From positions 1 to 52,106 of the forward strand of contig NIVC01004275.1 of NCBI GenBank assembly GCA_002269645.1: DNA of 52,106 nucleotides, written 5' to 3'. Shown piece by piece: positions 2,964 through 5,343 of this stretch (position 1 is the first letter of the stretch; every line of letters starts with the position of its first letter). The stretch is from Macrostomum lignano. Lineage: Eukaryota. The notes under the pieces are model-generated. The model had not been told where the DNA came from and did not search any database. It saw only the letters and a program-made list of their open reading frames with translations. A program made the position numbers and the translations under genes.

Positions 2964-5343
2964 TCATTCGAACATGCCCTGCTCGGGGTGCACATACAGC
3001 TCGGGCTTATCGTAGCCCATCTCGTCGATGGAGCTGATGCCCAGCTCAGCAAGGGTTGGTTTGATCTGCTGCATCATCCAGGGCCAGATCACCTTCTCTT
3101 GGGTGCCGCACTTGAACTGCAAGTAGAAAGCGAGGTGGTCAGGTGGCTTAGATAGCATGTATCTAGCGATGCAGATGTCGCTTACTAACGAGTAGCGAAA
3201 CTAATTTTTATGCGAATATTGTCCAGTGCTTTCCAGATTAAAACTGTACGCAGGTCAATAAGCATCATAGAGTCACGTGCGTCCTCTTAGAGTCGCTTCA
3301 GGCAACACAGGCAAAACAGGACAATAAGTGACTCTAAATAACTCTAAACCGACGAGATGTCACGGTACAAGTCGTCAAAGAGTCGCCTCACCCCAGAGCC
3401 GCTAGTGAATTGTACTTGCTACGACTGTTAAGCGACTTTTGTCACGGTAACAAGTTCAATGTGTTTCTTAGTGAAATTCTTCTGGCATGGTAACTTTCCG
3501 CTACGAGAAAATCAGCCAATTCGTTAAAAAATGCTGTTTCCAGCTTTCGACAGGCAGGTATCATTGATCTATTTCAATGCTCAGGTCACCAGATTATTAC
3601 CTATAGGGTGAGACTAACCGAAACTTTGAGCCCTCTCTCTCTCTCTCTCTCTCTCTCTCTCTCTCTCTCTCTCTCTCTCTCTCTCTCTCTCTCTCTCTCT
3701 CTCTCTCTCTCATTGATTTATGAAGGCGTAAAAGTCGGAATTTACTAAAAGTTCACGAGGCGAGCTGCTACCCGTGTCCTTGAGGCTCTTCCATGAGCTG
3801 CTACCCGTGTCCTTGAGGCTTTGCCATGAGCTGCTACCCGTGTCCTTGAGGCTTTGCCATGAGCTGCTACCCGTGTCCTTGAGGCTTTGTCATGAGCTGC
3901 TACCCGTGTCCTTGAGGCTCTTCCATGAGCCACTACCTGTGTCCTTGAGGCTCTTCCATGAGCCACTACCCATGTCCTTGAGGCTCTTCCATGAGCTGCT
4001 ACCCGTGTCCTTGAGGCTTTGCCATGAGCTGCTACCCGTGTCCTTGAGGCTTTGTCATGAGCTACTACCCGTGTCCTTGAGGCTTTGTCGTGAGCTACTA
4101 CCCGTGTCCTTGAGGCTTTGCCATGAGCTGCTACCCGTGTCCTTGAGGCTTTGTCATGAGCTACTACCTGTGTCCTTGAGGCTTTGCCATGAGCTGCTAC
4201 CCGTGTCCTTGAGGCTTTGTCATGAGCTACTACCCGTGTCCTTGAGGCTTTGTCGTGAGCTACTACCCGTGTCCTTGAGGCTTTGTCATGAGCTACTACC
4301 CGTGTCCTTGAGGCTTTGTCATGAGCTGCTACCCGTGTCCTTGAGGCTCTTCCATGAGCCACTACCTGTGTCCTTGAGGCTCTTCCATGAGCCACTACCC
4401 GTGTCCTTGAGGCTCTTCCATGAGCTGCTACCCGTGTCCTTGAGGCTCTTCCATGAGCTGCTACCCGTGTCCTTGAGGCTCTTCCATGAGCTACTACCCG
4501 TGTCCTTGAGGCTTTGCTATGAGCTGCTACCCGTGTCCTTGAAGCTCTCTCTCTCTCTCTCTCTCTCTCTCTCTCTCTCTCTCTCTCTCTCTCTCTCTCT
4601 CTCTCTCTCTCTCTTTCTCTCTCTCTCTCTCTCTCTCTCTCCGTTGCACTGTGCGCTCCGCAAATCTGTGCAATAGCCGATTGACTGTTAAGTTAATGTA
4701 CATTTTTCTACTTTTATCGACTCCTTTTCGTCAAAATTAATTAACAAAGTAACAAATTAAGTAAAGTAACAAAGTAACAAATTAACAAAATTAACAAAGC
4801 CTCAACATAAATAAATACTTCGTTTCCGATTCCTTATGAGCCTGACGATGCCTGACGCGAGGCGAAACATGTCGCTTATCGAAAAATGCTAGCGCTCGCT
4901 TTTTTAGTTTTACTGTTTACTGTTTTACTGTTTGTCAAATTTGAGTAATTCGTAAACATGGAGTGTGCACTGTGCAACTTCTGTGGGTCAGAGGCTCAGC
5001 AGTGTGTAAAAAAAACAGCCAGACTCACGCGAGTAGCCTCAAGGAAGCGAACAGCCAAGGCGTAGTCGTTGACACGCCGGCAGGCTTTGAGTGCGGCAGT
5101 GACAAGCTCAGGCTCGGGGACCAGATCCTCAGAGTACAGATCCTGCATAGCTTTGCGAATCACCCAGCCGTCTGATTGGGGATTGTTAAACATAGCCAAG
5201 TATTTGGCGTCAAACTCAGCCGGGGACAGTTTTGGCGCGTCGCTCAGCTGCCTGCTGACAACGCTGACGGCCGGCAGCGATGGCCTGGCAACTGAAACGC
5301 CTAATCTGAGCAGCTTGGCTGAGCTAGCGATTGCGCGGAACAT
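2964..5343 (-). CDS. COX5A: Cytochrome c oxidase subunit 5A, 2 coding exons, 155 aa
   Basis: Exon 5343-5029 (transit peptide; EFDAKY, DGW, DLVPEP, ALKACRRVNDYALAVRFLE; donor GTGAGT) joins in phase 0 to exon 3116-2964 (acceptor TTGCAG; KCG...WPWMMQQIKPTLAELGISSIDEMGYDKPE, stop TGA). Confidence 0.97.
3633..3710. repeat. (CT)n microsatellite
   Basis: Pure CT run. Confidence 0.99.
3762..4545. repeat. 33-bp minisatellite (GAGCTGCTACCCGTGTCCTTGAGGCTCTTCCAT), ~24 copies, in COX5A intron
   Basis: Unit visible directly; accounts for the overlapping repetitive ORFs on both strands. Confidence 0.97.
4546..4640. repeat. (CT)n microsatellite
   Basis: Near-pure CT run continuous with the end of the 33-bp array. 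Confidence 0.99.
4836..4879 (+). ncRNA. Minimal type I hammerhead ribozyme (Penelope/retrozyme-like)
   Basis: ATGAGC-CTGACGA-T-GCCT-GACGCG-AGGC-GAAA-CATGTC-GCTTAT. Core CUGANGA and GAAA are intact, helix II is GCCU/AGGC, helix III is the palindrome ACAUGU, the cleavage triplet is GUC (4871-4873), and helix I is AUGAGC/GCUUAU. Confidence 0.8.

Follow-up and report, generated by a model that had tools for sequence, protein, structure and literature searches.

Introduction

Minimal hammerhead ribozymes of Penelope-like elements (PLEs) were described by Cervera and De la Pena (2014; PMC4209133). Many animal genomes harbour thousands of them, mostly as dispersed single motifs away from intact elements, and these solo copies, which number thousands and are the commonest state, are regarded as truncated elements. 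They are type I hammerheads with a full core and a helix III of only 1-2 bp, usually with 4-5 bp in helix I and 5-8 bp in helix II. Three hallmarks lying outside the search descriptor characterize them, namely a nucleotide separating positions 9 and 10.1, a G10.1-C11.1 pair, and a palindrome at 15.2-16.2/loop 3 that allows dimerisation. Cleavage of single copies could not be detected in vitro (PMC4209133), and dimer cleavage was also reported by Lunse, Weinberg and Breaker, as cited in PMC6765202. In the Poseidon PLE PAc of Anolis carolinensis (Frangieh et al., 2024; PMC11167929), the start codon opens stem II, the cut lies 26 nt downstream and the hammerhead cuts only when the element's protein is present. 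Reverse transcription begins some 111-118 nt beyond this start codon overlapping stem II, so that every PLE insertion ends with a hammerhead (PMC11167929). In addition, PLE insertions were reported to be biased towards microsatellites (PMC8557442).

Other described systems share part of these traits. Non-LTR retrozymes, which are small non-coding tandem-repeat elements that spread through circular RNA, and amphibian satellite hammerheads (PMC7229834) are type I, with 6 bp in helix I, 4 bp in helix II and a palindromic tetraloop on a helix III of a single pair; they are active as dimers, form tandem repeats of 170-400 bp and present loop 1-loop 2 tertiary contacts. Amniotes have conserved intronic hammerheads (PMC7229834), represented by HH9 and HH10 of Rfam, which lie in sense orientation in introns of protein-coding genes, show deep conservation and a stable helix III, and are recognized by Rfam.

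In this study, we report a minimal hammerhead motif found once in a window of 52,106 nucleotides (the whole stretch of DNA analysed), antisense in intron 1 of COX5A. We consider, with a probability of roughly 80%, that it is the fossil 3'-end fragment of a PLE or of a PLE-derived non-autonomous element and is now inert.

Results and Discussion

Anatomy of the Motif

A complete type I hammerhead motif of 44 bases extends over positions 4836-4879 of the + strand. Its letters were read directly and its helices were assigned by pairing:

4836-4841, + strand: helix I, 5' strand, AUGAGC, pairing with 4874-4879
4842-4848, + strand: catalytic core C3 to A9, CUGACGA, N7 = C, read directly
4849, + strand: extra U between A9 and G10.1, hallmark of the PLE type
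4850-4863, + strand: helix II, GCCU/AGGC, 4 bp with the 6-nt loop GACGCG, by pairing
4864-4866, + strand: core G12, A13 and A14, read directly
4867-4872, + strand: palindromic minimal helix III ACAUGU (A15.1 to U16.1), read directly
4873-4874, + strand: C17 and N1.1, with the predicted scissile bond between them (GUC/G), by hammerhead numbering
4874-4879, + strand: helix I, 3' strand, GCUUAU, pairing with 4836-4841

Helix I comprises 6 bp, with one G-U among them (G4838-U4877), and its innermost pair is C4841-G4874; a C-G was present at the same place in 76 of 80 comparator hammerheads (see below). The core CUGACGA aligned to the covariance-model consensus CUGAUGA. The strands of helix II are GCCU (4850-4853) and AGGC (4860-4863), closed by G4850-C4863 as the G10.1-C11.1 pair. 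As the general hammerhead core requires, A15.1-U16.1 is A4867/U4872 and H17 is C4873. Within a monomer, helix III would consist of 2 bp and a 2-nt loop, which is impossible, while two copies can pair over 6 bp, with a computed energy of -4.6 kcal/mol for the ACAUGU/ACAUGU duplex. The motif also holds an internal direct duplication of 8 nt, GCCTGACG, at 4840-4847 and again at 4850-4857.

The initial annotation had placed the core letters, both helices, the palindrome and the GUC site exactly where we find them, omitting only the extra U4849. It must be noted that this U is no defect but a PLE hallmark and that, together with G4850-C4863 and the palindrome 4867-4872, it completes the three non-core hallmarks of PMC4209133, which bears out the earlier assignment to minimal type I hammerheads of the Penelope/retrozyme kind. 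As judged from its letters and pairings, the 44-base sequence is a genuine Penelope-type minimal hammerhead motif. It departs from most members of this class in its shorter helix II and longer helix I, in having C at N7, a rare base there (3/140 comparators), and in the absence of adjoining Penelope sequence or a second copy in 52 kb. In their lengths of 6 and 4 bp, helices I and II agree with canonical metazoan type I hammerheads (PMC4209133), which counts against a PLE origin.

Host Gene and Intron

Some 150 nt of COX5A intron 1 separate the motif from the exon 1 donor. The features of the locus are as follows:

5029-5343, - strand: COX5A exon 1
3117-5028, - strand: COX5A intron 1, host of the motif, from splice signals and protein alignment
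2964-3116, - strand: COX5A exon 2, whose acceptor cag/TTCAAG puts the exon start at 3116
4545-4641, no strand: (CT)n microsatellite from the repeat annotation, adjoining on the left the unique segment with the motif
roughly 4700-4975, + strand: putative retroelement fragment of uncertain extent, projected from the range of homology among comparators

The gene was recognized by the Pfam COX5A model (E = 2.8e-25). The intron donor is GTGAGT (5028-5023), and the spliced COX5A protein aligned without gaps across the exon junction to an insect COX5A. The best identity of COX5A in the protein database was 56%; a 533-aa C-terminal exon of an EGF/ephrin-receptor-like gene, also in the window, reached at best 36% with a snail protein. 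The protein database contained no near relative of the source organism, which may belong to a sparsely sampled invertebrate lineage. With exon 1, donor and acceptor located on the - strand and the motif on the + strand, the antisense intronic position given in the initial annotation holds, as does its statement that the COX5A pre-mRNA is spared, since this carries only the reverse complement of the motif. Intron 1 consists otherwise of micro- and minisatellites.

The Motif Is Not Explained by Chance

A chance match in repeat-rich intronic DNA was considered. The core letters alone (CTGANGA...GAAA...TH) were observed 6 times against 6.6 expected, the 8-nt duplication lies inside the motif, its fold energy was unexceptional (z = -1.7) and Rfam gave no match. 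Given that the core letters are at chance level, the signal resides in the helices and the extra features. A descriptor combining core and helices matched once in the window, while 3000 dinucleotide shuffles of the window gave 0.0087 matches per window with loose settings, 0.0003 when helix I of at least 6 bp and helix II of at least 4 bp were required, and 0 when the palindromic helix III was required as well. As an empirical null, the fixed letters were sought in 596 Gb of prokaryotic genomes, where the 68 (about 70) scattered matches had no preference for U at the extra nucleotide (A24/T23/C15/G6). Only 1/68 had both helices of at least 4 bp, and none of the 68 combined helix I of at least 6 bp with helix II of at least 4 bp. 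Combining pairing probabilities, the chance expectation is estimated to be well below 1e-4 per gigabase. In addition, the three class-specific features of the motif were not needed for noticing it. A fortuitous match is thus exceedingly improbable.

Comparators, Covariance Model, and Rfam

Comparators were obtained by scanning JGI metagenome contigs, of which more than 120 contributed, for the fixed letters alone, these letters being taken from the candidate. The extra position was T in 134 of the 139-140 matches; helix I had at least 4 bp in 98 and helix II at least 4 bp in 100 of 139. Only 15/139 combined at least 6 bp in helix I with at least 4 bp in helix II. Helix sequences were diverse, and inverted pairs 100-400 bp apart were frequent, an arrangement already reported for PLE insertions. 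In an unbiased descriptor scan, the same contigs yielded 120 hammerheads, all 120 with a 1-nt insertion (T in 115), with G10.1-C11.1 in 116 and with an ACATGT helix III, a hexamer that was not required, in 105. No long ORFs were found in the comparator contigs, and the association of the comparators with Penelope comes from their architecture and the literature rather than from an RT.

A covariance model (R1) built from 80 comparators, with the candidate left out, recognized the candidate at full length (1-47) with 30.3 bits and E = 1.6e-7, a score that is partly circular, as the comparators were fished with the candidate's letters. This value lies in the lower quarter of the comparator range (19-60 bits); the next best site in the window scored 12.5 bits. 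Most fixed-letter-only null matches scored 13-21 bits, and 29.8 bits were reached by one match with partial pairing, whose 3.4-kb contig had been binned as prokaryotic. For this reason the R1 bit score was dropped as sole discriminator and the helix statistics were used instead.

The initial annotation had proposed an Infernal search with hammerhead models. Searched over 301 nt, the Rfam hammerhead covariance models gave no match, whether the gathering score or E<=10 served as threshold. The same searches also missed about 25 clear minimal hammerheads distributed over 20 control loci and a size-matched control. Therefore, the Rfam negative is uninformative for this class and Rfam was rejected as arbiter: the standard models are blind to such motifs, and the purpose-built model does match.

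Solo State and Relation to Retrozymes

No second copy of the motif was found in the 52-kb window by BLAST or by model R1, and TRF found no tandem array covering 4800-4900. Neither RVT nor GIY-YIG Pfam domains were present in the 64 frames of at least 85 aa across the window, in agreement with the earlier statement that it holds no Penelope coding sequence. Such absence is consistent with a truncated solo copy. The motif had been called a solo remnant: it is solo within the window and probably a remnant. A search of viral and prokaryotic collections for the exact pattern of its own helix II version revealed no same-family copy.

These data bear on an alternative that we regard as unlikely, in which the motif would not be a truncated Penelope but a non-LTR retrozyme present as a solo monomer. 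The 6-bp helix I and 4-bp helix II, the palindromic tetraloop capping a one-pair helix III, and the type I form are shared with retrozymes and amphibian satellites. The comparator units of about 220-270 bp have no ORF from the stem II AUG, and many copies of PLE type may hence be non-autonomous; moreover, a 2026 preprint argues for an origin of animal retrozymes from PLE pseudo-LTRs and for their occurrence as monomers too. Against this, no tandem repeat contains the motif; no loop 1, closing stem or loop-loop contact is apparent by inspection, and the local folds of 4800-4905 and 4700-4960, where a retrozyme unit would be rod-like, were not stabler than those of shuffles (z = +1.0 and +0.8, respectively). 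The combination of the extra U and an ACAUGU helix III is the signature of PLE minimal hammerheads, and retrozymes are depleted in introns according to that preprint.

The surroundings of the motif were also inspected. Homology to comparator elements in the flanks did not extend beyond the ribozyme core, the only matches being low-complexity and A-rich, and this absence counts against the PLE reading. A 12-nt inverted repeat is present at 4643-4654/4967-4978. A MITE-like element, suggested by this repeat and by A/C-rich vs. G/T-rich flanking repeats, was discarded: no target-site duplication, significant fold or other copy was found.

Proposed Origin

The motif shares part of its geometry with PAc. 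In the candidate, U4849 and its neighbours spell AUG (4848-4850), and the cut predicted after 4873 would lie 26 nt from that A. Unlike the start codon of PAc, this AUG opens only 14 codons (MPDARRNMSLIEKC, then stop), and the corresponding AUG of 134 comparators leads to 59 codons at most. The A9-U-G10.1 triplet was consequently rejected as the start of a Penelope ORF, and its coincidence with PAc may have a structural and not a coding cause. Among comparator families with multiple copies, homologous sequence spanned about -150/-170 to +60/+100 nt around the cut site, and the comparator units fit the published 3'-end geometry of PLEs (PMC11167929).

According to the proposed origin, the ribozyme-bearing 3'-terminal part (pseudo-LTR or "tail") of a PLE, or of a short PLE-derived non-autonomous element, would have been inserted by retrotransposition, antisense into COX5A intron 1 and beside the (CT)n microsatellite. 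Considering this tract (4545-4641) as the insertion target is speculative. In the parent element, tandem motifs in one RNA, or motifs in two RNAs, would pair their ACAUGU palindromes into an extended helix III. The dimer would contain a pair of three-way junctions, each built of helices I and II with the core CUGANGA/GAAA. Either junction would cut its own strand after C17 (here 4873/4874) and generate 2',3'-cyclic phosphate and 5'-OH termini, for which at least one PLE requires its own protein.

Cleavage Prospects and Possible Function

The minimum-energy fold of the monomer (-12.1 kcal/mol) pairs the core GACG with the UGUC of the cleavage site, and the hammerhead-compatible fold reaches -9.0 kcal/mol. 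By analogy with the PLE hammerheads described above, the candidate could cleave solely as a dimer or with a PLE protein. As only a single copy is present, it is probably inert now; the lone copy keeps every catalytic nucleotide and is most likely uncut and without present function.

In this regard, it must be considered whether the motif might be an exapted and still functional ribozyme by which a plus-strand transcript across the 5' part of COX5A is processed. All catalytic nucleotides are intact, helix I has its full 6 bp, the exon 1 donor is close and amniote hammerheads share the intronic setting. Unlike HH9 and HH10, the candidate is antisense, minimal and Rfam-negative. The window holds no partner copy for a dimer, the helix III duplex is weak, the monomer prefers the inactive fold, and the solo copies of the class found elsewhere are taken for truncated elements; this explanation is very unlikely. 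It is more improbable still that the motif owes its retention to its activity, cutting a plus-strand transcript over the COX5A 5' region with the help of host factors or of a Penelope protein acting in trans. If this were true, a ribozyme of transposon origin would have been exapted to curb antisense interference at a nuclear gene of the respiratory chain.

Significance

For the locus itself, the motif is of little consequence and is useful as annotation. Of wider consequence, the Rfam release 15 hammerhead models fail on Penelope-type minimal hammerheads, and genome scans based on Rfam thus miss them systematically. The motif also flags probable host-animal contigs within some metagenome-assembled "bacterial" genomes. 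At this locus, it probably marks a retroelement fragment in COX5A intron 1, which would indicate present or past Penelope-type elements in the source genome.

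Structure of the candidate hammerhead

The candidate, at window 4836-4879 (+), reads AUGAGC-CUGACGA-U-GCCU-GACGCG-AGGC-GAAA-CAUGU-C-GCUUAU. When the sequence was read directly, the core, helices, palindrome and cleavage site proposed in the initial annotation were all found in place, together with an extra U that it had not mentioned.

Elements of the candidate hammerhead
4836-4841 with 4874-4879, +, helix I, 6 bp including one G-U
4842-4848, +, core C3-A9 (hammerhead numbering)
4849, +, extra U between A9 and G10.1
4850-4853 with 4860-4863, +, helix II, 4 bp, closing pair G10.1-C11.1, loop of 6 nt
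4864-4866, +, core G12-A14 (hammerhead numbering)
4867-4872, +, A15.1 to U16.1, palindrome ACAUGU (hammerhead numbering)
4873, +, C17, predicted cut 4873/4874

The 8-mer GCCTGACG occurs twice within the hammerhead, 10 nt apart (4840-4847 and 4850-4857), the second copy contributing helix II's 5' strand as well as some of loop 2; this repeat is either a slippage duplication or a coincidence. The second CUGACG was ruled out as an alternative core, as its position 9 would be C.

The core letters CTGANGA...GAAA...TH alone were not significant (6 observed versus 6.6 expected in the window), and a descriptor requiring the helices too had one match in the window, the candidate site. When the window was shuffled 3000 times with its dinucleotides preserved, the loose descriptor gave 0.0087 matches per window, helix I of at least 6 bp with helix II of at least 4 bp gave 0.0003, and none was found when the palindromic helix III was required as well. 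As a null on real DNA, the fixed letters CTGANGANG(8-16)CGAAACATGTC were searched in 596 Gb of prokaryotic genomes, yielding 80 stretches, 68 of them scattered matches. The free "extra" position of these 68 was A in 24, T in 23, C in 15 and G in 6; helix II reached at least 4 bp in 2, helix I in 4 and both in 1, and none combined a helix I of 6 bp with a helix II of 4 bp, as in the candidate. Combining these null rates with simple probabilities of pairing, our own arithmetic puts the chance expectation far below 1e-4 such motifs per gigabase, and a chance match is effectively excluded.

Comparison with Penelope-type hammerheads

Penelope-like elements (PLEs) carry minimal type I hammerheads in their pseudo-LTRs, and the three hallmarks described for these hammerheads, a residue lying between position 9 and position 10.1, a G10.1-C11.1 pair and a palindromic 15.2-16.2/loop 3, are all present in the candidate (Cervera and De la Pena, PMC4209133). 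JGI metagenome contigs were scanned with the fixed letters only, and at least 120 matched; these are ORF-poor and come largely from few sample series, apparently including host animal DNA. These series may be insect-gut samples. Among the 139 matches listed, the free position was T in 134, 98 had a helix I and 100 a helix II of at least 4 bp, with helix sequences varying widely from group to group, and on about 20 contigs two copies lay 100-400 bp from each other on opposite strands, an arrangement described for PLE insertions (PMC8557442). A second scan of the same contigs, which required neither the insertion nor the G-C pair nor ACATGT, returned 120 hammerheads among the contigs listed, with a 1-nt insertion in every one (T in 115), G10.1-C11.1 in 116 and ACATGT in 105. 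At its base, helix I has a C-G pair in the candidate as it does in 76 of 80 comparators. Therefore, the candidate matches a real and abundant sequence class position by position. By every testable sequence criterion it is a PLE-type minimal hammerhead (min-HHR); helices of 6 and 4 bp are among the less frequent sizes in this class, yet still fall within its range.

Rfam release 15 gave no match in the window at gathering thresholds, nor on 4700-5000 at E<=10. This silence is uninformative because the Rfam hammerhead models miss the PLE-type class: a permissive search of 20 comparator loci with about 25 clear min-HHRs reported no hammerhead family, its sole output being spurious miRNA-like matches to inverted repeats, and a size-matched control, the 301 nt around a strong comparator (L040 4957-5002) whose helices I and II have 7 and 6 bp, had no match even at E<=10. 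The Rfam release 15 library thus has a coverage gap here: none of the Penelope-type minimal hammerheads tested was assigned to a hammerhead family.

Eighty non-redundant comparators were then aligned (A1), and a covariance model (R1) was built on this alignment with helices I and II, leaving the candidate out. With filters off, R1 found the candidate at 4835-4880 (+) over the full model length with 30.3 bits (E = 1.6e-7), a score which is partly circular given that the comparators had been fished with letters taken from the candidate; the next best window site had 12.5 bits. Comparators scored 19-60 bits, the candidate lying in their lower quarter, and fixed-letter-only matches mostly 13-21 bits. 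On a contig of 3.4 kb, a match with partial pairing reached 29.8 bits, and five "prokaryotic" loci 24-50 bits, at least one of them a well-formed min-HHR that probably sits on a misbinned host contig. In view of these caveats, the case rests on the helix statistics and the class hallmarks, with the R1 match as support. The covariance-model check proposed initially thus came out divided, Rfam staying silent on candidate and positive controls alike and the purpose-built model matching; the reading as a minimal Penelope-type type I hammerhead is supported by hallmarks, helix statistics and R1 together.

Comparator contigs L002-L121 hold 259 model matches in 440 kb (e.g. L031 1095-1129(-)/1361-1395(+); L063; L078), and their Penelope-type min-HHRs often form divergent inverted pairs 100-400 bp apart. 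Being ORF-poor and dense in such motifs, they look like host animal DNA within metagenomes. Several short contigs with well-formed Penelope-type hammerheads were also seen in species-representative "prokaryotic" MAGs, in Dysgonomonas sp. GLO_MAG_00070 (loci L123, L124, L146, L160, L165, L168, L175, L177, L189) and in "bacterium isolate 3a0c8501" (L182, L192, L201), with L137 also among the "prokaryotic" loci. The 13 MAG hammerheads all have the extra T, with a helix II of 4-7 bp in 11, and point to eukaryotic host contamination of those bins.

Location in COX5A intron 1

COX5A exon 1 corresponds to the ORF at 4996-5343 (-), its GTGAGT donor lying at 5028-5023, and exon 2 starts at 3116, preceded by ctttctacttgcag. 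The spliced product matches Pfam COX5A and is 56% identical to an insect COX5A, with no gap at the junction. The candidate lies about 150 nt into intron 1 on the opposite strand, so that the antisense placement first proposed is borne out by junction and strand. The proposal that this orientation spares the COX5A pre-mRNA also holds: the pre-mRNA carries only the reverse complement, which is not a hammerhead, R1 matching the + strand only. An exapted ribozyme acting on an antisense transcript is an unlikely reading that found no support. The remainder of the intron is mostly repeats.

Repeats of COX5A intron 1
3633-3711, (CT)n microsatellite
3762-4546, 33-nt minisatellite, ~24 copies, 93% matches, between two (CT)n tracts
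4545-4641, (CT)n microsatellite
4734-4799, 8-nt repeat

A 12-nt piece of the 33-nt unit recurs inverted at 4794-4805. The unique 335-bp segment of the candidate is flanked by a 12-nt inverted repeat (4643-4654/4967-4978, GTTGCACTGTGC / GCACTGTGCAAC, 92% complementary), for which neither a target-site duplication nor another copy was found. The COX5A start codon (5343, -) has an 18-nt minisatellite (consensus GCCTATAGATCAAGCTGT, ~91 copies, 5408-7051) beginning only about 65 nt upstream of it, and therefore the 5'UTR/promoter must lie in or against the array. Between SHMT and the COX5A 3' end, just upstream of where SHMT coding sequence starts with its first exon (ATG 1663, -), units of ~57 nt, each with a CCAAT-box-like AACCAATCAGA, are tandemly arranged (1712-2187) and may be a multiplied promoter element.

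Solo state, origin and activity

The 64 stop-to-stop frames of at least 85 aa screened across the window revealed SHMT, COX5A, a P-element-like transposase domain, a PNP_UDP_1 (MTAP-like) phosphorylase and EGF/HYR/ephrin-receptor-like/laminin-G domains, and neither reverse transcriptase nor GIY-YIG nuclease. With no second copy in the window either, the description as a solo motif with no Penelope ORF nearby stands. An adjoining Penelope ORF, a class-defining feature, was thus not found in the 52 kb, which is the usual state of PLE-type copies. The broken P-element/THAP9-like transposase at 25500-28300 (-) spans several frames (TNP-like_GBD, E = 1.2e-8, Pfam; Tnp_P_element weak, below cutoff) and represents the remains of a DNA transposon, with no relation to the hammerhead. 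Two long low-complexity tracts with strong strand skew also occur in the window: at 18000-21000 the skew reaches 0.69 for GC and 0.61 for AT, and the tract at 37350-38120 is T-rich (AT skew -0.61) and translates as CLSV repeats.

A less likely reading of the candidate is a solo monomer of a non-LTR retrozyme. Its helices have the sizes of canonical type I, and PLE pseudo-LTRs are put forward as the source of retrozymes in a 2026 preprint; against this, no tandem repeat covers the candidate, and there was no sign of loop-loop contacts or of a stable unit fold.

In PLEs, the hammerhead is located at the junction of pseudo-LTR and ORF (PMC11167929). In Anolis PAc the start codon opens stem II, the cut site lies 26 nt downstream and reverse transcription begins 111-118 nt into the ORF, so that every insertion, however 5'-truncated, ends with the hammerhead and a short tail (PMC11167929); hence most genomic min-HHRs are solo (PMC4209133). 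Like PAc, the candidate and 134 of the 139 comparator matches listed have AUG at A9-U-G10.1. No coding inference is drawn from it because the frame that follows has just 14 codons at this locus and no more than 59 among the comparator matches listed. Homology within multi-copy comparator families extends over units of ~220-270 bp, which begin ~150-170 nt before the cut and end ~60-100 nt after it; projected on this locus, such a unit would span ~4700-4975, with the (CT)n tract directly to its left. A bias of PLE insertions towards microsatellites has been reported (PMC8557442), but any link with this neighbouring tract is speculative.

Two motifs are believed to be required before hammerheads of this class can cleave (PMC4209133; PMC6765202), their palindromic helix III segments pairing to give two active sites. 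The computed ACAUGU duplex of the candidate reaches only -4.6 kcal/mol, and in the best monomer fold (-12.1 kcal/mol) the GACG of the core is paired with the cleavage-site UGUC, compared with -9.0 kcal/mol for a fold compatible with the hammerhead. Single min-HHRs showed no detectable cleavage and dimers weak cleavage (PMC4209133), and the PAc hammerhead required its own protein (PMC11167929). The lone candidate, having no partner in the 52 kb, is therefore most likely inert. In conclusion, the initial observation is confirmed and its interpretation supported, and the candidate is an ordinary find for an invertebrate-type genome.
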